A stretch of DNA of 64,000 nt from Anthoceros angustus (Eukaryota > Plantae > Anthocerotophyta). The stretch is from positions 372,545-436,544 of the forward strand of contig VJWM01000187.1 of assembly GCA_010909165.1 (NCBI GenBank), given 5' to 3'. Below, piece by piece: positions 380 to 42,924 of this stretch; position 1 is the stretch's first letter; each line of letters opens with the position of its first letter. A model generated the notes under the pieces. It was not told the origin of the DNA, ran no database searches, and saw only the letters and a list, made by a program, of their open reading frames with translations. The position numbers and the translations under genes were made by a program.

Positions 380-1036
380 GTAGTCGCTGCTGCAGGGGCC
401 TCTCGACGCGCCCAGCTTGAATTTTTTCTGGTAGTGCAGTGAATTTTAGAGAGAATTGACCTTTTGGTCATTGTTTTACCAGAGTAAAATTCATTACAAT
501 ATAGTAGAAAATCATCTACCATCAAGGTACAAAACAATGAACCATCCAAGTGGGTAAAATCATCTACCATCAAGGTAGAAAATAGAGCACTAGAGTAGAA
601 AACATGACGACCAAGTGAATACCAGGTCTAGAAGCTCATTCTAGAAATCCCACCAAAATCGCTAATCGACAAAACATTTTCATTAAATAATATTCATGCG
701 GATCCGGGATATACAAAAACCAACAAAGAAACCTTTTCTTTGCGAGTTTCTGTATATCCGTAATGGCATGAACAAATTCAACTAATGAAGAGTAAATACC
801 AATAGATTGAACTCTGCTAGATTGAACTCTACTTCAACAACAATGGAACCTACAAACAAAACGAAAACAGCACACAAACCGTGATTAGGCTGATACTAGA
901 AAACACTGGAAATAATCATAGCAAATACTTAAGAAATGATACTCACCTTATTTAGGGAAATTTACTGTACAATTATACAGATTGAAAACGTAATTTTCAC
1001 GACCACTTGGCTTGATTGGCACTTGTACAAAGATCA

Positions 1037-4000: not shown

Positions 4001-4141
4001 CATCAACTTTACCATCATCCTGCGGTGGATGGGTTGCGATGAAGAAGCGGACACACTGTCAGTGTATATGGCTTAGCCATGACTTGACCAAGGACCCTTG
4101 CTTTTTCCAGTCGAAGGCCCAGGGTTTCTTTTAGGAGCCAT
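1037..4141 (-). CDS. Multi-exon tyrosine recombinase (Crypton/DUF3504-like), copy 1
   Basis: Start MAPKKKP at 4141. Exons read ..VEDIPHKDLN.. and ..KTRVSKGMLSRFMKTMAEA..GYYTNKSCRVTMITR..VT(G)HK.., followed by a C-terminal coiled coil. GT-AG introns. The 3' end is approximate. Confidence 0.8.
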
Positions 4142-6349
4142 CGCAAAGCCAAAAAGAATTAGAGTGGACAAGGAACACAACCATCCTAAAGGAGAACTTC
4201 ACAAACAAAATCAAAACCAAAAACACTTACGTGGTGTTCGAACTTCCAAAACGAACTTCTCAAGGGTCTAACAGATGATTATAAAACAATCCAAGACAAA
4301 GAGAGGTGGGGACATGGCACGTAATACATTCATTGAATCTACACATTGTTAAATTTAGTGATCCTTTCCACTTTATGTTAGTGAGAGAAGAGCACTCCTT
4401 TCCCAAAATACCCACATACTTCATAATTAGACCTATTTGCCAAATAATAAGAAAAACAAAAAAAAGTAGCCCCAGCAGTAAAAAAGAGCATAACGCATCC
4501 GAACATTCAATCGTGACTAATCAAGCAAGAAGAGGTTATCACGATTCACGTATGCACTGTAATGAACACGCAAACAGTAAGCCTACACAAAAATTTGAAT
4601 TAAATAACTTATAAGTGGTACCAAAGCAAACTCTTACCACGGTGACCAAACAATGACGAAAATGACAAAGACCATCGGTCAATACATACATAATCATACC
4701 ATATCAAGGATAACACCATAAACAAAACTTCAACTTCATCAAAAGCTTGTCCAAGAAAGCTTGTCCGCACACAAAACCAATAAGAAAGAGAAGCACGTTT
4801 TGCACCGACAAACAAACAAACGATCTGAAATTATAACATTTGAAGCAGGAAAAAGTAAACCACAAGGACAAATGTAACTCAAGTCACGCACATCGTTAAC
4901 CAACACTCTCTTACATTAAAAATCTTGCGGAATTACTTCCTGCGTCTCGAAGAATACAAAACAATTAAAAATGCTGCTCAACATAAAGAACAATGCATCG
5001 AAAACAAGATAAGATAGCATTTTAACAACAACATATCGTAAAGCGAGTAACAAAAGACGCTTTCACGTACCAAACAAGGTCCCAAATGTGTCCGCTTACA
5101 TCCAAACCTTGATCGCATCAAAAGCGAGAGAGTAAGATCACACGAGGAAGGCGAACGCTCTCCGAGAAAGAACAAAAAGGCAAGCTTTGCAGACTGACAA
5201 AACAAACAAACGATACAGAACCATGACAGCAGGCTGCTATGATGCAGCAGGCTGATGTAGGCACAGGACAAACTGCTGTCACAGCTTGCAAAGGCTGTTA
5301 ACCAACCTCTCTTACGTCCAACAACCTCTTGCAGCCGATTACTCCCTGCGTTTCAAACAAGAATAGAAGACAATAAGAACAAAATATTGCTCAACATTAT
5401 GAACAATGCAAGCTACTGAAGAGAAGATAACATACATTTTCCAACAGCAACATATGCGTAAACGCAGAGTAACCAGTTGACACAAAAGACATTTGATGAC
5501 TTACCAAAGTGGTCCCGATCTGTGACCGCCACTTCAAACGAAAACTTGACTGCATCAAAACACAGCGGGAGAGGGTTACAACACACGAGCAAAGCGAAAA
5601 CCAATAAGAACAAAGACTTGAGAGCTAGCCGCTTTAAACGACACATTTTAAACCAAACAAAACTACACGAAGACACAAGAATGAAACCTAAATAACAAAC
5701 GATCGTGTGATAGAGACAAGAAGACGGGCAAGACAAAAGAAATGATACCAAGCCATGGAACCACGACAACAAGCGGCGGATAAAGGGACACTTCCAACAA
5801 CAACAAACAAGCAATACGAGATTTTGCGAGAAAGAACACAAGTATCACACATGCAACAGGACTGAACAAAAGTAAGCCTAGCTACAACCACAGAAGCTCG
5901 AAAGCTCCAAGTCGAAGAGCACGTTTACATGAGAGGAAGTAACACCATAAACAAAACCGCACAAAACAACAAGACACAAAACAACAACAAAACCGCACAA
6001 AAGAACGAGAAATCAGATAGAAACAAAGAGCACTAGGGACATACAAATCAGATAACATCTTAGCAGGTCTTTCCCTAAGAAATATAAACAATCACGCACA
6101 AGCAAAGAACAACATCAACAACAGGACGAAATACACAAAACATCCTACGATATATATAGAAACTTGAATACACTACCACCATAGCGGTAGACAAAACACC
6201 AAACCAATAGACTAGAAAACAAGAATGAAACAAAACCAAAGCGCCAAATACACAAAACAACAACAACAAAACCGCACAAAACAACAAGACACAAAACAAC
6301 AAGACACAAAACAACGTGAACGCAGATGGACGACTTCAAATGGGAGCAA

Positions 6350-6815
6350 AAGGCCTTAACCTTTAACAAACCTTGGCCTTGGTACCAAACAACCTTGGCC
6401 TTGGACTAAGCAAGCACATGGACCTTAGAGGCAAGACACCTTGGCCTTGAACATGGGAACCCCTTGGCCTTCGGAAAAGAACCTTCAAAACAGAGCAGCA
6501 AAACCTTGGCCTTCGAAACAAATTTTACAGAGACCTTGGCCTTCGAACGAAGGCTGAGAAAGGCCTTAACCATTGGAAAGGGCCTGAAAGAAACCTTGGC
6601 CCAAAAACTTAAAAGACCTTAGCCTAGCGAACCTAGAACACCTTGGCCTTCGAATGAGCTACAAACCAGACCTTAGCCTTCGGAGCAGAACCAGAAAGAC
6701 GTTGGCCTGCGAAACTAGAACTAGACAGCTCCTTCCCCGAAACAGAGGAAGGAAGACCTTGGCCTACGAAACTAAACACAGAGCAAAACACCTAAGCCTT
6801 GGCGCCAGAGACTAG
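6350..6815. repeat. Cluster of dispersed (A)CCTTGGCC(TT) motifs in the YR gene leader
   Basis: More than ten accttggcctt-like motifs spaced 20-50 bp apart; similar clusters at 17200-17920 and 36590-37320. Confidence 0.75.
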
Positions 6816-6872
6816 ACCACCTCGGACTTGAAAAGACAGAATGACAAAAGAACTCGCGCTCTGAGGGAAGCC

Positions 6873-6897
6873 ATTTATATAGGCCAGCAAACCCTAA
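6873..6897 (-). promoter_or_regulatory. TATA box (minus strand) next to telo-box AAACCCTAA; probable YR gene promoter, copy 1
   Basis: atttatatagg...aaaccctaa. The same TATA/telo-box pair is conserved at 18039-18060 and 37476-37498 despite divergent flanks. Confidence 0.6.
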
Positions 6898-7289
6898 ACA
6901 TTCTCACTCTGGCGGCGCCGCCGTTCTCTCTCTACCAAGCTGGTTTGAATTTACCGAACCTAACATTCCGAGCCCAATTCCAAACCAACGTAGGTTTGCC
7001 ATTCGCTGCCGCCGCCGCGCTGTTCAACCAAACCTAGATTCAATTTTCCAAACCTAGCCTAACGGCACCAAACCTAATCTCCGAACCCCGGCGTGAGCGA
7101 ACCCGCTACCGCCAACCACGATCGCCACGCACACCATCGAACCATCTAGAACCCTAACTTTCGATTAAACAAGATGCACATAGGGTTATCTTCGCCCAAC
7201 ACGCCAGTCGCAGGGCCGCGCGGTCGGCGGTCCGCATTTCGATCACTGCCGTCGCCAGAGTGACCTCTTGCTCACAGTTTGGCTGGTGT

Positions 7290-8750
7290 CCTCGGAGAAG
7301 GTCTGGCGCAATCGGCTCCTTCCTTTCATCTAGGTACTGCCCACTACATGCGTCTGATGCACTTCTTTCTTCAGTCGCCGTTTCTTAGTTCCAGGATCTA
7401 GGTGGGTATGCCAAATTGCGCTCTCTGATTCTGCTGCAAACCATCTGATCACGTCCCTTGCAGCCCACACCGGTGCTCCAGCTTGCGCTCATCTCCTGCC
7501 ACCGCCAACACGACATCAAGAAGTCTCGACTGGCGTCCTCTGTGGGTACGACGTCAAGCACACTTGTCTCTTCTTTTGTTTTCGTTGCAGACCAATTGCC
7601 AACGCCACCGCTGGCTTTTGCTTCCGCCGCCTCGGTAGCCTGTAATCGCTCGTGAGTTTGCTTTCAAGCGCCTTGCTTATCAAGTGATTTAATTTGCGAA
7701 GTCTCGAGACATAGGCTCAAAACCTCGACGGCGCCCTCCGTGTACGTCACACACTTACGTGTCGGTTCTCTTTTGTTTTCGTTGCAGCCCAATTGCCAAC
7801 GCCCACTGCCTCATGGCTTTTGCTTTTCGCCCTGGATATGTTATCGCATCGTGGAGTTTGCGCTTCAACCGCCTTGCTTATCAAGTGATTTATTCTGCGA
7901 AGTCTCGAGACATAGCGCACAAAACCACTTGAGTGGTCCAATGTAAGAAGTAATGTGAACGATTAAGCCTCTGTGTCGCCAAACCGACCTTACTTCCATT
8001 TGCTTGTTTCCTTTTTCAAAGTCCAGCCATCAAGAATAAGTGTGTCCTCGGAGAAGGTGCGCAATCGGCTCCTTCCTTTCATCTATCACGCCCACTACAT
8101 CGATGCACTTCTTGTTGCCATTTCTTAGTTCCGGGATCTAGGTGGGTATGCGCGCTCTCTCAAAACCATCGATCCGTCCTTGCAGCCCACACGGTGGTCC
8201 AGCTTCGCTCATCTCCACCCCCGCGACATCAAGAAGTCTCGTGGCGTCCTCCGTGATCTGACGTCAAGCACACTTACGTCTCTTCTCTTTTGTTTTCGTT
8301 GCAGCCCAATTGCGCCTTGTCTCGCTTTTGCTTCCGATCTTGCTCTGGATAGCACTGTATCGCTCGTGAGTTCTTTGCTTTCAAGCGCCTTGCTTATCAA
8401 GTGATTTATTCTGCGAAGTCTCGAGACATAGGCTCAAAACCCTCTGGCGTCCTCAGGTGAGTGCGTTGTCAAACACTTACGTCGTGTCTTCTCTTTTGTT
8501 TTCGTTGCAGCCCAGCGCCGGTATCTCATGAGCTTTTGCTTCGATCTTGCTCTGGATAACTTTGTATCGCTCGTGAGTTCTTTGCTTTCAATTGCTTATC
8601 AAGTGATTTATTCTGCGAAGTCTCGAGACATAGCACAAAACCACTTGAGGTCCAGTAATGTAATTAATCGACGATTACCAAGCCTACAGTCATGTGACCT
8701 TACTTCCATTTGGTTGTTTCCTTTTTCAAAGTCCATTCTGGCGATCGGTA
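7290..8750 (+). repeat. Higher-order duplication (~720 bp x2) containing four copies of a ~190-bp acceptor-exon-donor cassette
   Basis: 7290-8030 resembles 8045-8750. ttttgttttcgttgcag and ttatcaagtgattt(a)ttctgcgaagtctcgagacatag each occur four times; three of the four cassettes show a gtgagt donor. Confidence 0.8.
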
Positions 8751-9220
8751 ATGTGAGGTCCTCGATAGTGTTGTCTCGACCGCTTGACCATGCATCGGCT
8801 TAATCTTCGCTGCCTTGCACCTAGATCACACCGAAACACGTGGCCTTAGAGTGGTGTGCGAGGTCCAACCACACGAAAAACCTAGTAAGTCACCCTACTT
8901 TTGCTTTTTGAAGCTTGTATCACGCATGCAGTAGTTATAGAAGCATGCCTGTCAGCTTTTGTCGCGGGCATGGTAGTTGCAGGAGCATGCACTTGCGCTT
9001 GTTCGCTGACGCAGCGTTAGTGGCGGCATGCCGCAACACGCGCGGTGGACGCCACCGCATGCTTGGGACCGCAAGAACGCCTTGGCTCTCAGCGCCGCCG
9101 TCTCTCGACTTCCTTGGCTCTCGACTTCAATTGCAGAGCCTTTGCAGAGCCAAAGTGTCACGAACGACACACGCACATCACAACAATGTGTCGAGTCAGC
9201 GTCTAGTAGATGCATAAATA

Positions 9221-9484
9221 GGCATGCGCAACACGCGGCGTTGAGTGGTATGCCGCAACACGCGGCGCTGAGTGGCGGCATGCCGCAACACGCGGCGTTG
9301 AGTGGCGCGCCGCAACACGCGGCGTTAGTGGCGGCATGCCGCAACACGCGGCGTTGAGTGGCGGCATGCCGCAACACGCGGCGTTGAGTGGCGTACGCCG
9401 CAACACGCGGCGTTGAGTGGCGGCCGCAACACGCGGCGTTGAGTGGCGGCATGCCGCAACACGCGGCGTTGAGCGGCGGCATGC
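9221..9484. repeat. 30-bp GC-rich minisatellite, ~9 units (GCGGCATGCCGCAACACGCGGCGTTGAGTG)
   Basis: Directly visible, with caacacgcgg recurring nine times. One partial unit at ~9015-9045. Confidence 0.95.
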
Positions 9485-9516
9485 ATGGGCTTGCTGCTGC
9501 AGCTTTGGGATGCGGC

Positions 9517-10440
9517 AGATTAGAACGGACGCGGGACGAGAACGGCCGAGGCCGTGAGGCCGAGACCGTTAGCCGCGGCGCCCGACGCGCCGTCGCCTCG
9601 GCGTGGAGCGGCCGAGTCTCTGGGCCGAGACGCGCCCAACTCGATCGCATCATATGAGCCGAGGTCTCGGATCTTGTTTAGACCGGGTGCCTATACCACC
9701 CGGCTTATATGTCATTTCTCTCTCTTAAGAATTTCTACCATCAGATTATTTTTCGCTTTTTCAACTTTTACACAATAAAAGGATTATCTCAGTAATTAGG
9801 CTCTAATCAAAATAGTTTTGGTTAAATCACACATATTCTATTGGAGTAGATGGAGTGTAATATGGTTCCGTCGCCCGCCTCTTCGAATAGTACTTTTGAG
9901 TCTGATTGTATGGTCCGGATAAATGTATTATCATTTCAAATATTTCATCAGCGAGAATATTTCTAATTTAAACCATTGTCGAATTCATATATAAAACTTA
10001 TCTATTTTTTAACTTTAGTACTCACCTCAAAGAGTGAAAACAACTCGTTTTGATTCTCCGATAACTACAAACAAAAGTAAAAGTAATTAGTCATTTACCT
10101 CCATTTCAATTCGGAGAAGATCTTTCTTTGCATATACCTTTTCGACAAGCGTTAAACACGTCGTGAAGATTCCCCACATGCTGAAATGTGATCGTATGTT
10201 ACGAAGAAACATAAACATTAGAATTTTTTGGAATGCAAGCGGATATTACCTTACCTTCAAACGATGTACCTTTTGAATGTTTTAGTTGTCTCGGTTCTTC
10301 CATGAGAGACAACAAGTCTGCTTTCAACTCCTTATTTTCAATTGCTGCCCTATCTGCATTCAATGCATGAATTAGAATACATAGAATTATATGTAATGAA
10401 AATAATAGTGAAAAGAGAAGTTATCGCAGCTTACTTGCTT
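9517..10440 (-). mobile_element. Inverted right-terminal fragment of a related Crypton-like subfamily (3' exons of companion gene plus terminus)
   Basis: Reverse complement of 9517-9680 matches 21540-21700. 9900-10350 aligns in reverse with 20900-21350, with exons ENKELKADLLSLMEEP, EKVYAKKDLLRIEME and ENQNELFSLFE. Confidence 0.85.
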
Positions 10441-10447
10441 GGATTTG

Positions 10448-11940
10448 TTAACCCACGAGGGCTTTGGACAATGAGTGACTAAGCACAATGATTGTTTTTC
10501 AACGGTAAAGGATTCCACAGTGACCTTGAACCTTGACACCTTACGAGGGGCTTGTCCAATGTTATGAATATATGTAAGTCGCATCCCTCATTTATATACC
10601 CAAGTTTTCCTTGGCCCTTGGGAATCTTCGTGGAATTTTGCATCCCGAAACCCCTAATTACCATGGGCCAAGGAACAATCATCCTTGATTTCGTCATCCC
10701 CTTTTTTTAAATTCGCCCACTTCCTTGAGGTTGATTCCGTCCTTGGACTTTGGCCTCACAAATTTTTCCACAAAGTTCTTCTTTCGAGCACGGACGCCAA
10801 GAGTCCGCTAGCCTACTTGCGCCCTCGGGACGGAGTCTGCCTATTGGCGCACTCGGCACACCCGAGGCCAAGATGCAGTCCGTCGGCCTACCACGATCGA
10901 GCCTCCCACTCCCCAATGCGACGTTCTCTCGGCCCACGGTTTAGGGTTATCGGGCCTACCACTCCCGAGTCGCGTCCTTTCGGCCCTCCCGTGAGACTTC
11001 TCACGGTGAGTGCACGATGGCGTCGTGCAATCCGACCACATGTGGTGAAGCTTGAGAAACCGTTTTAATTTTTTGAAAAGTGTTTCGTAGAAAGGGCCTA
11101 TGTAAATTAGCCTACTTGTACCAAATATCAAAGGCTATCGCATCAAGCTATGTTGGAGCTTGAAATGACAACTTGCATGCAGAGAAGGCAAGTCAACCAA
11201 GAACAACCTTTAGACTAAACCACATCCTTGTAGGCGGTGAAAACCAAGCGTGGGATGAAAACAATCACTACTATTCAAGTTTTGAAAAGGGTGGAGACCC
11301 CATTAAAAGCGTTGAGCGTTTTTAGAGGACTTAACTTTCTCAAGGAGAAGCTCTTTGCCCACCAAAATTTTCAAACCTCCTAGGAGCAAAGATTTGCATA
11401 GTACTAAATTGCAATCAAGAATGTAGGTCGCTAGAATGAAGGTGGCGATAGTCTAAAATCTTATGTGAAACGAGTCATGTCCATGCACACGATGTTTGAT
11501 TTAACGTAAGCAAAAATCTTGTCACTAAAGGACGTGACGAAGGTCTTTTTCCAATCCATGAAGTCCATCGGCAAACCTTTAACTTTGCATGGTCGGGAGT
11601 GTGCATGAGTGTAAGTGTTGGAATGCGTGTTGGCGATGTGCCGTGGAATGCGATGCGGATGTATGGATGGGCGCGGGTCGGATGCATAGGATTCAAACAT
11701 TGACAGTTGGAGGAGTCTCACGGTCGCAGCTATATGACTATGCGACGACATACTCCTCACATCATTCTTGGCACCGGGACAAACATTTGACCCCTTTCAA
11801 AGCATAACAAATTGGCTCATAATGCACACGATCTATTGATACATTTAATTTTACGTAGTGAGAAAAAGTCGACCATGCATGCTAGTATGTGAGCTCAAGC
11901 ACACATGAGCTATTTGATTGAAGGCAAGTTCACGGTATCT
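10448..11940 (-). repeat. TFIIB tandem unit spacer b (promoter region with TATA at ~10590 and downstream-ORF region)
   Basis: Colinear with 22456-23950 over ~1.5 kb, from acccacgagggctttggacaatgag to gaaggcaagttcacgg. Confidence 0.9.
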
Positions 11941-12529
11941 AAAAAGTCACGGCCTTCAAACAGGACCTCATGCGCCCGGTAGTTTTCGGGGTAGTGCGGT
12001 GAATTTTAGAGAGAATCGACCTTTTGGCCATTATTTTACAGAATGTAAAATTCATTACAATATAGTAGAAAACATGCCAAGTGGGGTGAATATGATCTAC
12101 CATCAAGGTGGAAAACAGAGCACTAGAGTAGAAAACATGGCGACCAAGTGAATACCAGTGCGTCTAGTAGAAGCTCATTCTAGAAATCCCACCAAAATCG
12201 CTAATCGACAAAACATTTTCTTAAATAATATTCATGCGGATCCGGGATATACAAAACCAACAAAGAACCCTTTTCTTTGCGAGTTTCCAGATATCCGAAT
12301 TGCATGAAATCTAATTCAACTAATGAAGAGTAAATACCAGATAGAGTGAACTCGCTTCAACAAGAAACCTACAAACAAAACCAAAATTAGCACCCAAACC
12401 GTAATTACGCTGCTACTAGTAAACACTAAAAATAAAACATTGATACTCACCTTATTTTGGGAAATTTCTACAATTATCTGATTGAAAATGTAACACGACC
12501 ACTTGGCTTGATTGGTACTTTACATTATC

Positions 12530-15500
12530 ATAATTGGCAACCAATTGATGAAGAGGACTTGGCGAAATTGACCATCTTCCGCAAGGTCACAACCTAAAAC
12601 AACACAACCATTAATTTTCAATCTAGTAAACTGATTAATAAAAGCATAAAGCTTCGATCCGGATTTTCGCGAGATCGATTGCATATCTCGAGGCATACAC
12701 TCCGTTGTCTTTCCCACGTAATCTCCGAACCTCTTGCTCTTTCTGCTGCGCTTGATTTCTCTTGATGCTTAATATGCTCTTGTCTCCTCTCGCATTTCTC
12801 CCTCTGAATCTCAAGGGCTTTCTCTCTTTGCTTAGAGACTCGTAATTCAAGCTTTCGCCTCTGTCTCTCTATAAGTGCCTCCAAATCCTTTTTGCTGAAA
12901 CTCCATTTCCTGTTTCAATTTGTCATTCTCCAATTCCGTTCTCGGGAGATCGGCAAGCCATTGCTCAAAGCCACATTTCCATTTGATCCACAGTGCAATA
13001 TATCAGGTGCTACCACCACATACATCTGGTTAACTTCGGATGAATCACACTCACTGCACAATGCCCTCCAACGGAGGGCCACCGCATCCACTTCCCTCTG
13101 TGTCAATGTTGAAATGAGGGATGAAAGCCCACTAGTCGAAGGATTTACAATCTGCCAAGAAGAACACAATCAGGAAACTCCAAAATGAATGAAAACAACC
13201 AAAGAACAGCCAAAGAATCAACCTTGTCAACATATGGAATTTGAGTAGAACACCCTGTCGTTGGTGCTAGTGTCCATCTGGATGCCTTGGCAACAGCTTT
13301 CAGAAGGTGCCTGCCAATAAAAACAAGAACCAGTATGATTAAAAAAAACTAACATGGCCAGACTACAACAAAGCAACTTCACAATACTAACCTGAACTTC
13401 AAGACACAGTGGACCACATGGTGCAGAAAAACTCAGTTCAGTCCCAACATTGTTCAGGGGTCTGCTTTCATGATGAATAACAGGAGTGGCCACGAGGAGA
13501 CGACAAATCGAAACAAGTCGGGACACGAGATTTTGACACACAATCCCTACTTGATACAAATCTCAAACACTTACATTACTAACGTGTTGCACTTGCAAGG
13601 GGCCGATCTTGGTGACTAAAATACTATTTCGAGTTACATTCAACACATTGACGGAAGAACACCCTTAAATCATCCCGCATCCGATTGAGTTCTTCATTTA
13701 AAAGCTCGATAAGATCGTCGTTCACGAGAACAAGAACTCTTCGGTACTTTTTTGCTTGACCGAGCGGTCATATCTGCAAAACATATGAGAACGTTAGGAA
13801 CGAGCATACAAAGACTCAAATGTCACAAGCTTTCACAACATATTACCTTGAAAATCCAAATCCGTTTTATGGCGGTCACACTTCTCCCGGCCGAGGGCAC
13901 GAGCCATCGTCAAGCGTGTAATCATCGTTACAGCAGCTCTTATTGGTGTAGTAGCCAACAAGCCCAGCTGCTTCAGCCATGGTCTTCATAAATCTTGACA
14001 GCATTCCTTTTGAAACACGAAGTTTTGCATACCAAGCCTGAACAAAAAAACAAACAGTTAGTAAATAGAAACCACAAAACTCAAGCCCAATAAACCAAAA
14101 ACTTACATTGGATCTTGGGTTATCAATGGTTGAATTGAAGAGAAACCCCTGAATTGACAAATTCTTGTCATGTGCAGACCACTTGGGAGAGTGATCAATA
14201 TGACTTTAAAGGTTTCGATGGCGTCCTTTTCGTAGATCTTTGACCTTTTGAAATGCTCACTCTGGTAGTTCTTCATATCCACTTTGTAATTTTTGAATGC
14301 CGTTCTTCATACACGCAAATGAAGGCGAGCTCATCTGATACATCAAAACATCAAACAAACGGAAACAAAAGACTACCTCTTGAACAAAAGGTCCACTTTG
14401 AATCGATGCAAATGAGAAGTCCCTAATGAGCGGGTTATGTAACTCTTCACCACCTCGAACCCCAAACTGGTCATGCAAAAATATGCACACGCAAACAATA
14501 TAAGCATAAGGGCTCGTTTAAGACCATAAATGAACAATCAAAGTGCACCCCAAAACCAACAATATTACCTTTTAAGCCCCAAATGAGCATTGATGATCTC
14601 TGTGAAAGAATCATCGCTCATCATCATCAAACCTCTTTTCGACATGACACAATCCCAAGGTCCTTGCTGATTTTCATGGGCAATAGGCACCCATGGAAAA
14701 TTCCATGAAACAAGTTGATCGAACATCGAGAACCAAGCCGGCTTTGGTTCGGGATGCACTTGTTAAAATCCGGTTAAACCCACGAAAGAAAGACATCACC
14801 GCGTGAAGATCGGATCACCATGTGAGGAAAGTCGAACTATCAAAATCAACAAGTAAGAAAACATCACTACTTACGTTTACGGAGAAAATCTCCTGTCCTT
14901 GATTCGAACTTGATGGAAAAAGGGTATCGAATAAGATTTAGATCCTTGTAAGGAATATCCTCAAGATATCCCATCCCCTCACTTTCATAAAGGCCACGAG
15001 GCGACTTGACACGCTTATTACGCTTTGACCTATCCTCCCCACCACTCAAAGCATCATTCACAGCTCCCTCGGGGACAAATCACTGCTCTCGAAAATTTCT
15101 TCATCATCAATTTCCTCCATACCCATGGCAAAGTCATCTTGGGACCCGGACACTTTAGCCTCTCAAACATATCGAGCACTTCTTGATCGGGATGACTCGG
15201 TCGGGGAACCACAGCATGGAAAAGCGCCTGTAAAGCATCCTGTTCAAGCACACAAATCTCTAGACTCTAGGCAGGCTTTGGCGGTCACAACCATGGGATC
15301 CTCGTTATCAAGAAATCATTCTCCCCACAAATGGACCCCTCTCGAGACCGGGACATAGTTAGTAATCTCCGCAAGAGGACCTTCAACCAATGCCACAGTC
15401 GTGTCAACCCTTCTCTCTTTCTGCACAAACTCAAGCGTCGAGCATCCTTCTTGGATGAGAAGTGCCTTGGGTTTAGGAATGCCTTTTTGGAACTAAATAT

Positions 15501-15652
15501 GTTCCTTCACATGCACAACACCATCAACTTTACCATCATCCTGCAGTGGATGAGTTGCGAGGAGACGGTGACTTGACTGTGTCTAGTGTGCCATGACTTG
15601 AGGACCCTTGCTTCTTTCCCGGTCCAGGAGTGGGTTTCCTTTTGGGTGCCAT
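12530..15652 (-). CDS. Multi-exon tyrosine recombinase (Crypton/DUF3504-like), copy 2
   Basis: ttttgcag|ATG gives MAPKRKPTPGPGKKQG. Further segments: FLHDQFGVRGGEELHN(L)LIRDFSF (~14445-14490); CMKNG; acceptor then AWYAKLRVSKGMLSRFMKTMAEAAGLVGYYTNKS.R (~13930-14040); VT(G)HK (~13870); intron, then R|YDRS (Tyr at ~13770); C-terminal coiled coil LEALIERQRRKLELRVSKQREKALE. The 3' end is approximate. Confidence 0.88.
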
Positions 15653-18038
15653 CTGCAAAAGCACCGGTGATCAAAACACAAAAAAACATTTGAACCAGTT
15701 AATGAACTTGCAAAAACCAACATGAAAAGACTTACATGGAGATGAATGCTTTCAAATGAGAACTGCTGAAGGGTCTAAAGTTGATTATACCACAATCGAA
15801 AAGAAGGGAGTGTGGGAGATATTGCAGAGACACATCCTTTGATCTATACTGTTAGATTTTGCGATCCCTCCATTTTAAGTTAGAGAAACTTCCATTTTAA
15901 CAAACCCACATACTTCAAACACTCTTTTGCCAATAATATTGATAGACATTAGCCCAAGCGAGCCTTGATCACCGACCAGAAACACAATTTCACACTCGGG
16001 CAAATAGTTATCCCGAGACAGACAGACAATTAGAATGTTGGAAGAGCACCTTTGACAAATTTACCGAAAGCAAGTTTAGTGAGGTGGATATTATGAATGT
16101 CAAGAACATAAAGCAAAAAAAAGGAAAGTGTAAACATCTTACTAAAATCCGAATTCACCCTAAGAATTTTCGCGTGGGTGATGCACAACAAAAGGAGAAA
16201 AAGTTAACAACCCGGCATCGATGAAACAAACATAGCGCAAAAGAACCACGATTGACAACACCAACCATGACCAAGATACAAACCACGAGACATAATGCAA
16301 TAAACAAGAACAAAAGTCGACATAAAACACGAAACTAAACACATCATTAGACAAACACGAAAGTGACTAACAAGCGTGCACACGTTGGTGACGATGCAAA
16401 GACAATTCTGCGATGCGACGGTGGCGAAGTGATCTACCTTCCAATCGCGGACAAAGCGATGGCGCGCATCACAAAAGCAACGACAACGGCGCATGTGAAC
16501 AACTTCAAAAGACAAATACCTTTAAAATGTTTTGCCCAAAGGCGGCGATGCATGGAACAAGCTCTTCGCATGAAAAATAAGAGCATAAGTACAGAAGCGT
16601 AAGAACACCACACGAGTTAAGGGCGCAACACTTTAGAGAGAAAAGTACAAAAGCTGCGTGATTACAAATCGAGTCGAAGCAACGCTCACATGCCTTCGTA
16701 TCCGAGATACAGAACAATGTTTATACTTCACAAAGAAGAACATGCAGATATAAAATCGGACACGCGCGACACATCGGTGATAAACAAACGGACACGCTAA
16801 ACGAGATAAACACCAAGCGAAAACAAACTTATTAACAAGAGCATATATAGAAAATGAAAGCAGAGACGATGAAAACACAAGACCGACAAGACATTACACA
16901 CATCTCAAAGGCACTTCACGTGCGTCTTGAGCGTAAAATAACGCTGTGAACAAGCGGACAACACATTAACATGTAAGGCAATACCACAAAAGCAGTCAAG
17001 ATCTGCGAGCAACATAGTCACACAAAACAAGACTCCAAGTCGGTGGAAGTGATGATGACAAAGCAACAACCAGCGAGAAGAGCAAAATGAGAACACGAGC
17101 AAAGCAGACACAAAAGCACACCGTCCAGCAAGATAAAGCGAAGAGGCAAGTGAGAACAAAGCAGTCTAACAACTTATAGTCGAGCATGAGAGGTTAAAAG
17201 ACACCTTGGCCTTGACAGCGACAAGACGCAAAACCCTTGGCCTCGAACAAAACAACAATAAAAGAAACCTCGAATAACAAAGAAGACCTTGGCCCGGACG
17301 AGCATAAAGCGTAAACATAAAAACACTGAGCTAAGTCAGACAACAACAAGACAAGCTAACACAACAGAATCACGACATGATGCAAACCACAAGGCAGGCG
17401 CAAAGAAAGCTAAACATCTAAAACAAGCTAGGGCGAAATGGACCGACAAAGCGCGCGAGCACCACCTGGACCCAAGAAAAACCAACCGCCTTGGCCCTCG
17501 GACAAAAGCATGAAAGAACTTAAAACGAACAACAAATCGGACGTAAAAGCGTGCGTGGGGACATAGAAAAAGAAGGGAGAGGGCCTTAACCTAAAGGAAT
17601 CCTGGAAGGTCAAGCAAAACCCTTGGCCTCGACAAAACAACAATGAGAAACCTCGAACAACAAAGAAGACCAGGCCCGGACCAAAGCATAACGTCATAAA
17701 AGAACCAAGGAACAACACAACCCTTGGCCTGAAAGCACATCAAAATACAATGAGAACGGACTGAGACTATGAACTAACAAGCAAATCACCATGATGCAAG
17801 CACTACAAGGCCGAAAGCTAAGGCAACTAAAAAGCGCTAGGAGCTGGAGAAGCGCCTTGGCGCAGCGAGCACCTGGACCGCAACAAGTGAGAAACCAACC
17901 CTTGGCTCGGACAAAAGCTGAAACAAAGCTACAACCTTGGAAAGGACGTCAACCGAGGGACTAGAAAAGAGGAGTAGAAAACGCAGCAAGAATACCGGAA
18001 GGTCCCACCGAAAAACACTGAAAGACCTCCGTGAACCC

Positions 18039-18060
18039 TTATATAGACCCCAAACCCTAA
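18039..18060 (-). promoter_or_regulatory. TATA box plus telo-box, copy 2
   Basis: cccttatatagaccccaaaccctaa; position conserved in all three copies. Confidence 0.6.
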
Positions 18061-19825
18061 CCCTTCTCTCTCTGCGCCGCCACTCTCTCTCTAGAACCAA
18101 ATTTGAAAATACCAAACCTACTCGAGCCGGACACCCAACAACCTAGGTCGCCATTCGTTGCCGCGCCCTCCTCAAACCTAGTCTTGTTCCAAACCTAGCC
18201 ATAACCTAACCTAATTTCCGAACCTCTTCGTGCGTCGAACCTCCTGAACACCAGCCACGGCTCTTGAGCATCCGAACCCTAATTCATGTCTTGAGCACTC
18301 ACGCCTCGGACTCACTTCTATCGCCCACCAGTCGCTGCTCCCGCCCGCCCACGCCGCCCTGTGTCACTCGCCCTCAGCTCCGCTAGTTCCCTTGTTCCAT
18401 CCTCGAGTGTTCCTCCCACCTCCCTACCGCCCTGCCACAGCTGCCTCTTTCTCCACGTCCCTTGCTCACCTCGTGAGGCTGCGTCTTCACCTATGAACGC
18501 CTTTCGCCCGCAACGCGTTTCTCTTTTCGTAGTGAATAGCGAGTTTCTCTCATCCGAGCCCGAGCGCTCAACACACTCTGCTGGCTTCTCCCTTTGGTTC
18601 CAGGCGGTGCAAGCAATACCTCATCATCATTGGCGGCCTCAGGTGAAGAGCACGTGAAGACGTTTGCGATTGGCAAGGTGAAACTTACGCCGAGAGTTTG
18701 TTTTGCCTTTGAAATTGTTTGTTGTCTTTTGCTTTGTGCCTATGCTCATGCTTGACTCTACCGAGATACCACAAGAAGGTTCGAACGGCGAGAGTTGGCT
18801 CCGCAAGAAAATGCCGATTTTCCCGACGGGCCCTTTCCACTCACCCTGCTTGCCGCTCACCGCAGCGCCAAGGAGACAAAAGAGGTCTCCCTTGGCGTCC
18901 TCCGTGGGTACGACAACACTCTTGCGTGTGTGCGTCTTTTATTCTTTTCTTCGCCTCTAACACCCGGCGTCTCGCTCTTGCCTCAGTCTTTGCTTGTGAA
19001 TAGCTTATCGCTGCTATGTTTGCTTGCGCTTTCTTACCTTGAATGTTGCTGCGAGAAAACCTGACTCCTCTACACACGGCCTTGAGTCCAACATGCAGAA
19101 GACATCGAGCAGTAACAAGCCTACGGTGCGAACTTATCTTTCTACGCTTCGTTTGTTTTCAAAGTCGCTACTCGACCGAAAACGCTAGCAAGTCTTGATA
19201 GTTCTCGATGCTTGGCGTTTCTCACTCTCTTTATTCTCGCTTAATCTCGGTTAATCCTCCGGACGTAACCCGTTCAGTAGTGACTCCGCGCGCGGTGCGG
19301 GCCACACACATGCAAGAGCAGCGCGCTCTGTCTCAACCTATAGAGGCTGCAGTCGCATGCAGCCTTTCCTTAGGCATACAGTTGTCCTTAAAACTCAGGT
19401 TCAAACTGTAGCTAGAGTCAGCATTGGTCATTCAGCAATGTTTGAGTCAACATCGCGTCGTGACAACAACTTGTCAACTTTATGCCGGTATAGCATGGGA
19501 ACATGCGCTGTTGGTGGCATGCATCGGCGTTTGCAACTTGATATTGGATCACTCGACGAAGTTCAAAAGTCCGTAATCATATTTTATTTCTAACCGTGTT
19601 TTCCTAACTATTCGTTGGAAGTGAAATTGCATGTCCGAATATCTTAACGAGACATGAAAACCGGTTTGAGCGTAAGTCATATAGTCTTTGTGTTGCCGTA
19701 GTATATTTTATCAGCTGAAAGTCGCGGCATGCGACAACTTGCACCGAACGACAACTGCGGAGATGGCGCAAACACGTGCATTTTAAAAGTTCAAGTTATT
19801 CATTGGCACGGCTGCTTTTATTCTA

Positions 19826-21320
19826 ATGGCATCCGAGAATGAGAAACAGCGATGAAATGGTCGACATCCAAGAAGGTAATGATCATTTACGCCTATAAAT
19901 CCATTTTTGGTTGACTCATGGTGATTTTTCCGTAAGTGACAATAGTAAAGACCCAACAAACCTTAACTGGCGATCAACAACAATGTTCCCACCCATGGGG
20001 ATCCAGGATATGATGACTGAAGTTCAAATCCTCTCATTGAGATACGAAGATAGTTGAGAAAGGTAATACATTTCAATTAAACTAATTGAATCTCCATGAA
20101 CATTTCTAACTCGATATCTTTGATAGATTACTACGGAGCACACTATGTTCACATCAATGGACAAAAAGGACTTGCTCCTTTGCCGGTGCAATTGGAAAAA
20201 ATTAAAAAGGTAAAGACTTGGTTCGCAACTTTCTAGGGACAATATGTATCGCAACTCACTTTAGTTGTATATGGTTACAGGATATTAAGAAGAATCTCAA
20301 CAACTCAATTAGAGTTGGAAACAATGACTACGGGGAGGTTTAATGGACAAGATCTCAATTCATCGATTTTGGAGGTAAACAACTACACTATTATGTGTAT
20401 TTATTTGTAATAAATACTAATTTCCTTGTTCTGATCTTCTTGAACAAGTTGCAGCTAAGGAAATTAAGGAGAAAATTGAAGCAATGGATGACAAAATCAA
20501 CAACACGACCATCTTTCATCGTAATTGCTGTTGTATGTTTGTAATTAATAATTAGTATATTTGTAAGTAGTATATAATACAATCTTTTCAAAAGGACAAA
20601 AGAGGAAAAAGGAGTCAAGATAATGCACCAACGTATGGACCATCGAAGAATTTGCGATTTTGGAAAATGGATGGATAACTTTCGTATCCACAAGTCTTCC
20701 AAGATTTTAAATAGATATGTTCCCATTTGGGAACATAGCCTCAAAGATCCACAATCGCAATGAAGATGGGTCGTGAACCCTAGAAGACATGGAGATCCAA
20801 AAAGTAAGTGTTATCGGTTTATGTTATTCTTAGTATAGTTTATTTGAATCGGTTTATGTAGTACTAATGAAATTTTGAGTTTTGGTAGAAATATCGCCAT
20901 TGAAAATAAGGAGCTAAAACCATGCACTTGTTGACTCGATGGAAGATCCGAAACTACAAAAACATTCAAAAGGTTAGTTCAGTAACAATTTATTTATGTA
21001 AACAAGGAAAATTGATATTCGTATTTTTTAAATATGTAAATTCTAACGTTGATACCTCTTTGCGAGCATCACATTTCCGTAGTGTGGGAAATCTTCACAG
21101 CCATTGCCTCACATTAGTGAGAAAGGTATTCGAGCAAGATCTTCTTGACTTGAGATGGGTAAAATATTAACTGCATTTTTGTTTGTAGTTATCGAAGAAT
21201 CAAAAGGAGTTGTTTGCACTATTTGAGGTTAGTACATCATATTTACAGGTGAAATTGAATATGTACGATATCTAACATTTACCATTGCCGCTTATTCCGT
21301 TTGACGAAATTTTGAAATGA
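19826..21320 (+). CDS. Companion multi-exon protein of unknown function (~300 aa), copy 2
   Basis: ATG GCA TCC GAG AAT. About nine short exons with GT-AG introns, colinear with 39301-40847. Confidence 0.65.
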
Positions 21321-21712
21321 TTAACTTTCTTCTGGACCGTATAATGAACAAAGAAAGAAGTATTATTCAAGACGAGCGGATCCGAAATCGCGGTGTACAC
21401 CCCTTCAACGCCCGAGAAGAAAGTTAGAAAGGATAAATCGTAAAAGCGAAAGGCAAACGTAACAGCGTGAAAGTGAAAAACTCAAGTGCGAAAGTGGCTG
21501 AAGAGAGAGAAAAAGACTTTTAAAGTGGTTGCACAAACAGCGATTCTAAAGATCTTGAGACCTCCGCCTCGGTGGTCGAGTGGGAGGCGTCTCGGCCCCC
21601 GGCTCCGCCGCCGAGAGGCAGGCGCTCGTCGGGCGCCCGGCCTACGGTCTCGGCCTCGGCCTCGGCCGTTCTCGCGTAGCCCGGCGTCCGTTCTAATAAT
21701 ATAATCTAAGGC

Positions 21713-22455
21713 TCAATTCACGAGCTCTTCCAAACAAAAATTCCCACTTTGCAAAAACCATGCATCTATAACGGATGCATGCGGACGCAAAATCGGTAAG
21801 TGCTCTTGAGCGTACTCACCGCCACATTACATCGTCGGCAATGCTCTTGGCCGGCAGTTCCTCGAGATCTTGAGACCATGTATATAACTCCGGTGGCCGG
21901 AGCGGATGTAATTTTGTTTTCGAGGCACTCCACTTGAAAAAGCTCTCGCACTTTCCTTGCATTTCGAACTGGAACAAAAGTCTGCAAAATCCTTGGGCGG
22001 ATAGCTTTGGGCCAGCGCGGATTTCCTCGGGTCGTGACTCGTCATGACCCTCATTTCTAGGAGGTCCACCAACTTCCCAACAACCCCTGGTCAAGGCTAT
22101 AGCTGCAGTACCCAAAGCCTCGTAGATTTCTTGCATTGAGGTCCTTTCTTCTTTACAAGCCACGTACATAGCGGCGCCACATCGTCTTCACAACTCCCTT
22201 TTCTCAAGACCCTCGCCTTCTTGTACAAGGAACTTGCCAATACACGTGTTGTGCACAATTCTCATTCTTCTGCGAGCTCAAATCCTATCAAAGCGGATGT
22301 CATTGCCGTGAGTGGGAACCCGTGCATTCGTGTTCCGCGTGTGGATGCAACCCATTTTCCTTTGCGCTTTGTAGTGCGGATGCAAGTGGTTAGGCCAGCA
22401 TGGTCGAGCAAGTCATCCGTGTATCGTGGGGCGTCCCTGCTATCTGCTCCATCAA
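21713..22455 (-). CDS. TFIIB-like protein, copy b (intronless; zinc ribbon deleted)
   Basis: YTDDLLDHAGLTTCI; RVLASSLYKKARVLRKG; AAMYVACKEE..EIYEALG; GF(L)QTFCS; SAPATGVIYMV; KSIAD.CNVAVSTLKSTYRF.RPHAS..AWF. These correspond to the B-linker and both cyclin folds of TFIIB. Confidence 0.85.
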
Positions 22456-23950
22456 TAAATCCACGAGGGCTTTGGACAATGAGTGACTAACACAATGATT
22501 GTTTTCTCAAGCAGAGTAAAGAATTCCCGCGGCTTTGGACAACCTTGACACCTTACGAGGGCTTGTCCGTTTATGAATATATGTAAGTCGCATCCCTCAT
22601 TTATATACCCAAGTTTTCCTTGGCCCTTGGGAATCTTCGTGGAATTTTGCATCCGAAACCCCTAATTACCATGGGCCAAGGAACAATCATCCTTGGATTT
22701 CGTCATCCCTTTTTTTACTTCCTTGAGGTTGATTCCGTCCTTGGACTTTGGCCTCACAAATTTTTCCACAAAGTTCTTCTTTCTCGAGCAGGGCCTTGAG
22801 TCCGCTAGCCTATGCGCCTCGGGGACGCCGGAGTCTGCCGTCCTATTGGCGCACTCCGGCACACCCGCTGAGCCAAGATGCAGTCCGTCGGCCTACCCGC
22901 AGATCGAGCCTCCCACTCCCCAATCGACGTTCTCTACGGTTTAGGGTTATCGGGCCTACCACTCCAGTCGCCGTCCTTTCGGCCCTCCTGAGACTTCTCA
23001 CGGTGAGTGCACGATGGCGGTGTCGTGCAATCCCGACCACATGCGGTGAAGCTTGAGAAACCGTTTTAATTTTTGAAAGTGTTTCGTAGAAAGGGCCTAT
23101 GTAAATTAGCCTACTTGTACCAAATATCAAAGGCTATCGCGTCAAGCTATGTTGGAGCTTGAAATGACAACTTGCATGCGAGAAGGAAGCGAAGTCAACC
23201 AAGAACAACCTTTAGACTAAACCACATCCTTGTAGGCGGTGAAAACCAAGCGTGGGATGAAAACAATCACTACTATTGAAGTTTTGAAAAGGGTGGAGAC
23301 CCCATTAAAAGCGTTGAGCGTTTTTAGAGGACTTAACTTTCTGAAGAGAAGCTCTTTTGCCACCAAAATTTTCAAACCTCCTAGGAGCAAAGATTTGCAT
23401 AGTACTAAATTGCAATCAAGAATGTAGGTCGCTAGAATGAAGGTGGCGAGATAGTCTAAAATCTTATGTGAAGCAGTCATGTCCATGCACACGATGTTTG
23501 ATTTAACGTAAGCAAAAATCTTGTCACTAAGGGCGTGGGACGGCGAGTCTTTCAATCCATGAAGTCCATCGGCAAACCTTTAACTTGCATGGTCGAGTGT
23601 GCATGAGTGTAAGTGTTGTTGGGAATGCGTGTTGGATCTTGGTGGAATGCGATGCGGATGTATGGATGGGCGGGTCGGATGCATAGGATTCAAACATTGG
23701 ATTAATGGAGAGTCTCAGTCACGGCGGCTATATCGACTATGTGCGGCGACATACTCCTCACATCATTCTTGGCACCGGGGACAAACATTTGACCCCTTGG
23801 CAAGCATAACAAATTTGGCGTCATAATGCACCAGTCTATTGATACATTTAATTTTACGTAGTGAGAAAAAGTCACGACCATCTTGCATGCTAGTATGTGA
23901 GCGCACACACACTGAGCTATTTGATTGAAGGCAAGTTCACGGTAGCATAA
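22456..23950 (-). repeat. TFIIB tandem unit spacer c
   Basis: Uninterrupted 1.5-kb spacer between two TFIIB copies. ataatctaaggctcaattc at 21701 recurs at 23947, a period of ~2245 bp for this deleted unit. TATA gggtatataaat at ~22600. Confidence 0.9.
23217..23890 (-). CDS. Putative second intronless ORF downstream of TFIIB (unknown function)
   Basis: 112-aa open frame LSDKIFAYVKSNIVCMDMTASHKILDYLATFILATYILDCNLVLCKSLLLGGLKILV. It extends upstream via VKGLPMDFMDW and MVMTFSHYVKLNVSID in the other copies. Confidence 0.4.
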
Positions 23951-23958
23951 TCTAAGGC

Positions 23959-24340
23959 TCAATTCCACGAGCTCTTCCAAACAAAAATTCCCACTTTGCA
24001 AAACCATGCGGTACTATAACGGATGCATGCGGACGCAAAAATCGGTAAGTGCTCTTGGCGTACTCACGCCACATTACATGCGTCGGCAATGCTCTTGAGC
24101 GAGGCAGTTCCCTCGAGATCTTCTGGACCATGTATATAACTCAGCGGTGGCCGTGGGGAGCTTCGGATGTAATTTTTGTTTTCCGAGGCACTCACGGCTT
24201 GAAAGACTCTCGCACTTTCCTTGCGCATTTCGAGCACAGAACAAAGCAGTCTTTGCAAAAATCCTTGGGCGGATAGCTTTGGGCCAGCGGATTTCCTCGG
24301 TCTGTGACTCGTCATGCAGCCCTCATTTCTAGGAGGTCCA
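23959..24340 (-). pseudogene. TFIIB-like copy c, 3' half (split by Gypsy-1 insertion)
   Basis: GPKLSAQGFLQ..; LKSIADACNVA. Joins 43562 at ggaggtcca|ccaacttccc, compared with the intact sequence at 22060-22085. Confidence 0.8.
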
Positions 24341-24535
24341 GGTCCAGCGCAAGCAGCGTGACCTCGCAATTTGCCTACCAGCCCTGCTTACAAAGCTAAG
24401 TCACTAAACACACTGCGATCTCCTTGGCCTTGGCCGGGAGCAACAATCCTAGCCTTAATTGTCCTTGGCCTATGACCAAGGGCAAGGCTACAAAAGGTGG
24501 GTCACTTTAAGAGGCAGGCCCGAGGCACGGGCAGG

Positions 24536-25155
24536 TGAATCAAGCTGGAAAATTCTCCCAACGACAATGCAAGCGAACCACAAGAACCTCTAGGAGACAA
24601 AGACACGGCGGGGACAGTATGGTGTCTATTAGAACAAGACAAACATCAACAATCCAGAGAATCCATGGTGCCTACATATATAGGCAAAACCCAGAGTTCT
24701 CGATGAAGTGTCCACCGTGTCGATGGTGGGCACTTTATAATCCTACTTTCCTTGGCCTTGAAATAATAATATTTTATGTTTATGACCTATTCGTCCTTTT
24801 CCTTGATTTATGATTTTTATGTATTTTCTAATATAAATCTATCTATATATCGTCATTAACCGCGCCTTACATGCATACCATGCATAGATAGCATGCCATG
24901 ACACATCACACACATGTCCACATACATCACATGTCATCCTTCATCTCCATACGTATGCATACATGGCACACATGCATACATGGCATACATGTCATGTGCA
25001 GGCCATCCATGGGCCATGTACATGACATCATCAAGCACTTGACGCCGGGGCTTATGCGAGATGCTCGATCGATATCTAGTCATTTGATTGGGGCTTATGC
25101 CGGGATGCTCTAGTATATCCGGTCATAGAGTCTTAGGTGCTCTGTTTCCCATACG
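24536..25155 (-). repeat. LTR of Gypsy-1 (3' LTR)
   Basis: Close copy of 42925-43545. TG...CA-type ends; minus-strand TATA at ~24668-24675. Confidence 0.85.
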
Positions 25156-31371: not shown

Positions 31372-31949
31372 AAGTCGCTCTGCCTGGGGCCTCTCGACGC
31401 CCATTGGTTTTTTTCGGTAGTGTGTGAATTTTAAGAAAGAGAATCAACTTTGGCCATTATTTTACAGATAGTAAATTCATTACAATATAGTAGAAAACAT
31501 GCCAAGTGGGTGAATATGATCTACCATCAAGGTGGAAAAGAGCACTAGAGTAGAAAACATGGCGACCAAGTGAATACCAAAAGGCCTAGTAAAATCGCTT
31601 CTAGTAATCCCACCAAAATCGCTAACTGACAAAAACATTTTCGTTAAATAATATTCATGCGGATCCGTGATATACAAAACCAACAAAGAACCCTTTTCTT
31701 TGCGAGTGATATCCGTAATTGCATGAAATAAATTCAACTAATGAAGAGTAAATACCAGATAGAGTGAACTCGCTCAACAAGAAACCTACAAACAAAACCA
31801 AAATTAGCACCCAAACCGTAATTACGCTGCTACTAGTAAACACTAAAATAAAAACATTGATACTCACCTTATTTTGGGAAATTTATCGTACAATTATATT
31901 GAAAATGTAATTTTCACACCACTTGGCTTGATTGGTACTTGTACATTAT

Positions 31950-34900: not shown

Positions 34901-35072
34901 AACTAAATATGTTCCTTCACTGCACCAAGACACCATCAACTTTACCATCATCCTGCGGTGGATGAGTTGCAGGAGGACGGCCGACTTGACACTGCCTACA
35001 ATGCTTAGCCATGACTTCGCCGTGGACCCTTGCTTCTTTCCCGTCCAGAGCCCAGTGGGTTTCCTTTGCCAT
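31950..35072 (-). CDS. Multi-exon tyrosine recombinase (Crypton/DUF3504-like), copy 3
   Basis: gttggccataaa gives V.GHK. Also TNKSCR, FDDGSVPSIFGRSV, QYKEFLFTVSSDLIELLNEELNRMRDDLRVFF and WNFPWVPSVVASMKIGKDLGIV. The 3' end is approximate. Confidence 0.85.
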
Positions 35073-37475: not shown

Positions 37476-37498
37476 TTATATAGGCCCCAAAACCCTAA
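37476..37498 (-). promoter_or_regulatory. TATA box plus telo-box, copy 3
   Basis: cttatataggccccaaaaccctaa. Confidence 0.6.
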
Positions 37499-40847: not shown

Positions 40848-41256
40848 TTAACTTTCTATCCGGACCGTATAATGAACAAAGAAAGAAGTATTATTCTCAA
40901 GACGAGCAGATCCGAAATCGCGGTACACCCCTTCAACGCCAGAAGAAAGTTAGAAAGATAAATCCAAACCGTGAAAAGACAAACGAATAAAGCGGAAAGT
41001 GAAAACTGGGCGAAGTGAAAACTGTGAAAGAGAGAGAAAAAGATTTTAAAGTGGTTGCACAAGGCAACAGTTCTAAGATAAAGACAGACCGGCCACCGCC
41101 TCGGCCTCAAGTCGAGTGGGAGGCGCGGCCCCGCCCAGACTTACCGCCGCCTTACGCTGGAACGAACGCCGCTGGCGACGCCAGAACGGTCTCGCCTAAC
41201 GGCCGACCGCTCGCCGCGGACGCCCCTCCGTGCCCGATCCGCCCCCAATACAAGAT

Positions 41257-42922: not shown

Positions 42923-42924
42923 GG

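Follow-up and report, generated by a model that had tools for sequence, protein, structure and literature searches.

A probable Crypton-type DNA transposon with a conserved companion gene in the hornwort Anthoceros angustus

We have analysed a 64,000-nucleotide (nt) stretch of the genome of the hornwort Anthoceros angustus (assembly GCA_010909165.1, contig VJWM01000187.1, positions 372,545 to 436,544 of the forward strand; hereafter 'the window', with all coordinates counted from its first letter), and find that a 9.8-kb element has inserted at least twice in this DNA. Taking the evidence as a whole, we consider it probable that the element is a divergent and site-specific DNA transposon of Crypton type, resident in a non-seed land plant and equipped with a tyrosine recombinase (YR) gene and a conserved companion gene. 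The element is seen as colinear copies lying in different flanks, with filled and empty insertion sites, a motif shared between junctions, and the signature of selection on both of its genes. Working from left to right, it consists of a 1.7-kb arm, a leftward-reading YR gene, a spacer of ~4 kb, a rightward-reading spliced gene and a GC-rich right terminus (Table 1).

Table 1. Features of the element and its insertion sites; a solidus marks a junction.
Feature	Coordinates	Strand	Remarks
Copy B	11938-21700		Full-length, ~9.76 kb, ends +/-10 nt; colinear with C; flanks contiguous in paralogous host units
Copy C	31372-41261		Second full-length element; flanks unrelated to those of B
Copy A	380-7157		Diverged lineage; recombinase arm 380-4423 plus weak colinear block 6867-7157; box I deleted, right part rearranged
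Fragment D	9519-10437	minus	Inverted right arm: last four companion exons and right terminus; lineage ~70% identical to B and C
Left arm	11941-13626	minus	Non-coding, 3' of recombinase gene
Tyrosine-recombinase-like gene	15652-13627	minus	Begins with ATG at 15652; some five GT-AG introns predicted; reading frame disrupted in all copies
Box I exon	14377-14466	minus	FGVRGGEELHN.LIRDF; candidate first catalytic Arg
Exon from MKNGIQK through GFLFNSTIDNPRSN	14107-14334	minus	Candidate beta-hairpin Lys; continuous only in three-copy consensus
Box II exon	13846-14037	minus	AWYAK...YYTNKSCR; K-x-x-R instead of H-x-x-R; possible TGHK needs frame correction
Last coding exon	13654-13774	minus	(S)RYDRSVKQ...DLIELLNEELNRMRDDLRVFF; candidate nucleophile Tyr
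Central spacer	15653-19825		~4 kb between two outward-reading genes; A-rich on plus strand (AT skew 0.5), low complexity, poorly conserved, different in A
Companion gene	19826-21232	plus	ATG at 19826 (39301 in C); at least seven short GT-AG exons
Last four confirmed companion exons	20896-20971, 21083-21126, 21135-21158, 21190-21228	plus	
Right terminal region	21560-21700	plus	GC-rich, ends ...GCGTCCGTTCTAAT; kept between B and D
Host heptamer ATAATCT	21701-21707	plus	Directly after B
(A)TAATCT at other right junctions	C 41255-41261; D 9516-9521 (minus strand)		
Uninterrupted paralogous target	23930-23960	plus	...GTTCACGGTAGC/ATAATCTAAGGCTC
Further empty units	252, 62549 and 58579 (minus strand)		

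Self-BLAST and a three-way MAFFT alignment show the ~9.8-kb unit to be present as two copies, B and C, which are colinear over their whole length—81% identical when gaps are counted, about 90% at aligned bases—and whose flanks are unrelated to each other. The original prediction had listed three colinear copies; whilst B and C are indeed full-length, copy A is homologous to them only over its recombinase arm and one weak block further on, and we find no support for the end at 8900 that had been assigned to it. Absent from that list was a fourth piece, fragment D, which is an inverted right arm: its segments 9519-9644 and 10018-10348 match 21697-21576 and 21235-20896, respectively, with 102 of 129 aligned bases identical to B at the right terminus but just 129 of 254 immediately inside it. 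D adjoins the truncated A, and the two may represent one rearranged copy of the diverged lineage; ~660 nt of the expected host repeat are gone next to them, an arrangement that resembles the inversion and deletion at an element end caused by Cryptons in Chlamydomonas (PMC9977147). As claimed at the outset, the element is without long terminal repeats (LTRs), terminal inverted repeats (TIRs) or a reverse transcriptase (RT): terminal repeats of at least 20 nt, whether direct, inverted or split, are absent from copy B, and 30 stop-free pieces taken from both strands contain no RT, RNase H, Rep, helicase, DDE, peptidase or other Pfam domain.

The host sequence is a tandem repeat of ~2.45 kb. The flanks of B (10450-11937 and 21701-22068) match two segments (22458-23944 and 23947-24340) that are contiguous in a paralogous unit, and the left flank of A (1-379) matches 23693-24072, such that A entered another unit, 125 nt further on. 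Four uninterrupted paralogous units read ...GTTCAC(GG..)ATAATCTAAGGCTC, and B has been placed directly 5' of the ATAATCT. Although paralogous rather than allelic, these empty sites demonstrate the insertion of a discrete segment of 9.76 kb. The earlier observation of filled and empty sites in the same window therefore holds for B, with the left flank of A matching likewise, but not for C, which has no empty counterpart in the window.

At the right-hand junctions of B (...CCGTTCTAAT/AATATAATCT/AAGG), C (...CCCAATAC/AAGATAATCT/TCC) and D (...CCGTTC/TAATCT/GCCGC) we find (A)TAATCT in each case, at B as part of the host sequence; on the left, B (CACGGT-ATCTAA-AAAGTC) and C (AAGCC-ATCAG-AAGTC) carry ATCT or ATC before (A)AAGTC, the left junction of A (CGCCAC-GT-AGTC) is without the motif, and in the empty units ATAATCT is present once. 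This pattern fits recombination at a short shared motif, but is no more than suggestive, because the AT-rich ends and the noise in the sequence permit several parses and because A does not conform. It is the pattern predicted by Goodwin's model for Cryptons, and it also matches that of CryptonF-1_cRei from Chlamydomonas reinhardtii, an active element with CACCG at its end and CAYCG as its target (López-Cortegano et al. 2023; PMC9977147); terminal direct repeats of 4-6 bp are described for Cryptons in general (Kojima and Jurka 2011; PMC3212892). By analogy with the model and with CryptonF-1_cRei, an active recombinase would join both ends of the element into a circle, with an expected junction of ...CCGTTCTAAT joined to AAAAAGTC...; a short AT-rich end motif (...TCTAAT/TAATCT) would then recombine with the near-identical target ATAATCT, leaving the inserted element next to the motif, with neither terminal repeats nor a target duplication of the transposase type. 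Any role for the companion gene in this process is one that we infer.

The YR gene can be followed through the copies by its minus-strand peptides: FGVRGGEE at 14466 and 33839, WYAK at 14034, 33437 and 2547, YYTNKS at 13953 and 2473, and RYDR at 13775 and 2294; AWYAKLRVSKGMLSRFMKTMAEAAGLVGYYTNKSCR is a further motif peptide of the same gene. These peptides had been quoted in the original prediction and are found as such, whereas two others, TRLFDDG and VTGHK, cannot be read in one frame of any single copy, and need both frame switches and a mixture of copies. The candidate catalytic motifs come in canonical order—R (VRGGEE), K (MKNG), K-x-x-R, (H), Y (SRYDR)—with the Arg of the tetrad present in B and C and deleted in A, and the Tyr present in SRYDR. 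When A is compared with B/C over 200 clean codons, 27 of 69 changes are synonymous, against 21% expected (P=3e-4), and in two shifted frames the excess is not significant; since the excess is seen in the proposed frame only, the frame is genuinely coding and has evolved under purifying selection. For the left 1.7 kb we considered a third gene but rejected it, no frame on either strand having an excess of synonymous changes.

Of the tests for a tyrosine recombinase, the one with a positive outcome was a protein-language-model search of the ESM Atlas. For the box II exon, the neighbours are DUF3504 (0.87), Phage_integrase (0.87) and DUF3435 (0.86), with the ten best matches all falling within the recombinase clan; for the piece holding box I and the Lys (14260-14466), they are an oomycete NDC10_II cluster (0.95, a score that, according to the search tool, shuffled sequences reach once in 100), DUF3504 (0.91; 13 matches) and DUF3435. 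Such families belong to DNA elements of the Crypton and Starship types. That two separate exons should both reach the same small clan, as predicted beforehand, would be hard to obtain by chance, and it is on this basis that we accept the gene, with considerable confidence, as a YR of Crypton type. The claim of an intron-containing gene with exons like those of eukaryotic Crypton-type recombinases is thus upheld, both by the neighbours of the two exons and by purifying selection on the frame. The more specific claim of a match to the DUF3504 pattern is not: the Pfam hidden Markov model (HMM) is negative for the exon pieces and for two read-throughs of ~75 amino acids (aa), and we do not file the gene under DUF3504.

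Reading away from the recombinase gene is the companion gene, whose exons encode charged, coiled-coil-like peptides. For its last four exons, identity between D and C is 84%, as against 58% for the introns between and beside them (Fisher P=5.5e-9), a comparison that has to rest on D because B and C are too alike for exons to be told from introns. Judged by this difference, the predicted gene is real, spliced and under selection, in agreement with the second, divergently transcribed spliced gene described in the original prediction. It has no Pfam family and no neighbour in the Atlas, and Peptidase_C48 was not detected by Pfam in the pieces of the element.

Besides the left junction of A, a number of observations count against a Crypton-type transposon. 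The R-H-R-Y tetrad is incomplete, box II reading K-S-C-R in all three copies, with Lys in place of His; the second His (as TGHK) is obtained only by assuming two compensating 1-nt errors in each of the copies, all copies reading SV(T/L)AIK in frame. In no copy is the frame open, and between A and B the exons (87%) and introns (86%) are equally conserved. The language-model matches share 109-154 features, below what is usual for pairs from the same family, and for this reason they remain leads. With HMMER, no Pfam family—DUF3504, NDC10_II, DUF3435 and Phage_integrase included—was found at E<=1 in any exon piece, nor in the two read-throughs (with X at the break) that span the halves of the catalytic domain (N-terminal, 75 aa; C-terminal, 77 aa). 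An exhaustive phmmer search of 1.84 billion representatives with the longest clean piece, the N-terminal exon piece 34397-34717, gave 0 matches, and a sequence search of the PDB returned chance matches only. Word-indexed homologue searches with the box II and box I pieces were also blank, but say little, as they demand three shared 5-mers and a similar length. The remaining adverse points come from short-read data: in the one public run matched (see below), no contig falls on 15666-16400, the centre of the B/C type, and a contig that might have served as evidence of splicing did not. This contig (depth 9) skips 14148-14250 (103 nt) and 14040-14098 (59 nt), near two predicted introns; the ends of the skips are not GT-AG and one of them removes probable coding sequence, so we rejected it as evidence for splicing and treat it as a deletion variant of the family. 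Further searches also came back empty, with chance-level matches only in PHROGs and nothing from metagenome scans made with peptide patterns and with an exact 25-mer of an exon.

The broken frames have to be read against the quality of the sequence. All copies consist of extended, identical AT-rich blocks broken up by short, messy stretches, and contain many frame breaks; columns with insertions or deletions are as frequent between copies as mismatches, the ratio of transitions to transversions is 1.1, the density of mismatches is 2.5-3 times higher near CG (within 4 nt), and no pair of repeats in the window is more than 95% identical. This looks more like an unpolished long-read assembly of methylated repeats than like natural decay, and if so the frame breaks are no proof that the copies are dead. 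Either these copies are dead, or the assembly has misread them. Should the latter be true, every call of a broken gene in such regions of the genome would be affected.

How common the two-gene form is within its family bears on the first of the alternatives, in which the recombinase arm is a one-gene Crypton of ~4-5 kb, and B and C, with their 9.8 kb, represent a side branch, chimeric or laden with cargo, which acquired the spacer and the companion gene and moved a few times by way of the recombinase, without being the usual architecture of the family. In a search of public runs the stretch matched one, X1 (available as contigs), and no RNA run. Within the part of B compared (11941-16400), X1 has 620 contigs between 11983 and 15665, of which 221 are at least 99% alike, with a word depth of up to 1300; set beside the bare 15666-16400, this indicates a high-copy recombinase arm and a rare B/C-type centre, and keeps the side-branch alternative alive. 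The two-gene form may thus be a minority variant. Copy A, which shares the recombinase arm but little of the centre, speaks for the same alternative, as does a companion gene with neither a relative nor a link to recombination. Against it, both ends and everything between them are common to B and C, and in the ~30% diverged lineage of D the companion exons are still attached to that right terminus and remain under selection. The neighbouring A and D may moreover be one rearranged two-gene copy, and the X1 comparison spans 4.5 kb only, to which the companion arm does not belong. On balance, we regard this alternative as unlikely, although it is one to be taken seriously.

We hold it very improbable that the copies are the remnants of a YR retrotransposon (of DIRS, Ngaro, PAT or VIPER type) that has lost its RT and RNase H. 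An intron-containing YR in the absence of classical LTRs is indeed known from DIRS-type elements (PMC13465315), but two independent 9.8-kb copies have no trace of RT or RNase H in any of the 30 pieces, there are no inverted terminal repeats, internal complementary region or split direct repeats, and the nearest language-model families are of DNA-transposon type (DUF3504, NDC10_II, DUF3435), ahead of Phage_integrase. Scarcely more can be said for segmental duplication of a host gene pair, namely a domesticated recombinase and its neighbour, in a repeat-rich region; duplication is rife in this decayed tandem array and all copies are broken, but the ends of the copies coincide to within 10 nt in three unrelated contexts, one copy precisely interrupts a repeat unit, and the hundreds of near-identical short-read contigs favour a high-copy family. 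Helitrons encode a Rep/helicase and have 5'-TC...CTRR-3' ends with a 3' subterminal hairpin, inserting between A and T. A non-autonomous Helitron-like element with two captured genes, B being parsed as host A, then TC...CTAA, then host T, is hardly credible: the left end of B can be read as A/TCTAAAAAG and the right ends of B and D as ...GTTCTAA/T, but C and A do not fit, the AT-rich ends permit many such parses, no Rep/helicase is present in the pieces scanned, and both genes are under selection, unlike captured fragments. Helitron-like ends with a terminal hairpin were rejected as a candidate feature, the parse fitting B and D only and the ends, any 3' hairpin included, folding no better than shuffled sequence (z -0.1 to -1.2).

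Returning to the Crypton-type transposon with its companion gene, a bolder version can be formulated, in which non-seed land plants host a high-copy lineage that is still active, its recombinase working through a K-x-x-R site like that of topoisomerase IB, integrating next to ATAATCT, and needing the companion, a conserved protein specific to the lineage, as an accessory factor for directionality, targeting or escape from silencing; the breaks in the genes would then be assembly errors in methylated repeats. We think this version rather doubtful.

Several other features of the copies and their surroundings deserve mention. The segment 12090-12390, non-coding and near the left end, is both the best conserved part of the element (94% identity between A and B) and the most abundant (X1 word depth >1000); it could be a cis-acting site or end, or the core of short non-autonomous derivatives. 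The centres (16000-18500, 36000-38000 and 4000-6300) are A-rich on the plus strand, with an AT skew of 0.38-0.50, and contain dispersed short repeats (CAAAACCCTTGGCCTCGAAC), conservation being poor here even between B and C. Within the portion of A to which nothing in B or C corresponds there is a tandem array (7286-8735) with a period of ~200 nt and units 74-84% alike, and directly beside the terminus of D are nine tandem copies (9221-9484) of a GC-rich 30-nt unit, GGCATGCCGCAACACGCGGCGTTGAGTGGC, which read as a stop-free frame of 241 aa on the minus strand. On either side of C are two 620-nt repeats (24534-25154 and 42923-43544) that are 85% identical and probably the LTRs of a Gypsy element, such that C may be nested in a retrotransposon; no Pfam family was found for any of ten neighbouring open reading frames of at least 140 aa, six of which adjoin C. 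Scans of the window for tRNAs and against Rfam were empty.

Cryptons are, to our knowledge, the least understood class of eukaryotic DNA transposons, and we know of activity seen directly only in Chlamydomonas. In the literature searched, characterised Cryptons come from fungi, animals, stramenopiles and Chlamydomonas, DUF3504 is treated as a family of opisthokonts with a recent subfamily from Glomeromycota, and land plants appear only in survey tables, with no characterised Crypton. The suggestion that no land-plant Crypton had been described can therefore be kept for characterised families, but not in its general form, as Crypton is already listed among the superfamilies reported from land plants in annotation surveys (PMC4438587). 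Nor is a second gene without precedent, as had been supposed: CryptonF-2_PS and some CryptonS elements carry an extra C48 (Ulp1) peptidase gene (PMC3212892), and with this oomycete precedent a two-gene Crypton is not new in principle. The element is accordingly not a new kind of system; its value lies in a full-length anatomy and a probable target motif, within the limits set by noisy or broken copies and by a recombinase with no HMM or fold support. So far as we are aware, this is the first full-length anatomy of a recombinase family of this kind from a land plant; it comprises both termini, the probable target motif, insertion sites that are precisely filled or empty, and another gene under selection. 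It would also bring a land plant into the Crypton class, whose known hosts are fungi, animals and algae. With polished sequence it would become testable whether bryophytes or ferns harbour active site-specific YR transposons, whether Lys can stand for the hallmark His, and what role a Crypton accessory gene plays. For those annotating transposable elements in hornwort, fern and liverwort genomes, it offers a reference element.

Set beside known systems, the element resembles DIRS and Ngaro, which encode a YR, sometimes with introns, and are without a classical LTR; they also possess RT/RNase H, however, as well as terminal repeats of inverted or split type, and we find neither here. DIRS elements also carry a methyltransferase. 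Starships, the DUF3435-captained elements of Pezizomycotina, are mobilised by a YR, as our element probably is, carry cargo and are site-specific, and DUF3435 is among the language-model neighbours of our recombinase; they are, however, fungal, tens to hundreds of kb long and have the captain at their 5' end, as opposed to the 9.8 kb and single companion gene seen here. The likeness to CryptonA/DUF3504, including the Glomhoppers (a DUF3504/CryptonA subfamily of Glomeromycota; PMC13465315), lies in the nearest language-model neighbours, in motifs that are similar by eye (xRGGEE, WY...G..L, TN.S.R, Y.R), and in the occurrence of copies with and without introns in repeat-rich compartments; by contrast, Pfam DUF3504 is unmatched in our pieces, and Glomhoppers retain the His of R-H-R-Y where we find Lys. 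With CryptonF-2_PS and CryptonS the element shares an extra protein-coding gene beside the YR, and the top neighbour of its box I exon is the oomycete NDC10_II cluster; theirs, however, is a C48 peptidase, whereas here the gene is intron-rich, has no detected family and lies 4 kb from the recombinase. From the Cryptons of Chlamydomonas, to which we liken it by description and not by sequence, the element differs in its second gene, 4-kb spacer, many introns and K-x-x-R, and from CryptonF-1_cRei also in its motif (TAATCT/ATAATCT) and in that activity, observed there, is suggested here by paralogous sites. What it shares with them is a place in the green lineage as a DNA element with a probable YR gene, the absence of TIRs and LTRs and, it would seem, a short end motif with a near-identical target; and as the Chlamydomonas Cryptons are associated with inversions and rearrangements (PMC9977147), so too does an inverted fragment, D, lie beside copy A.

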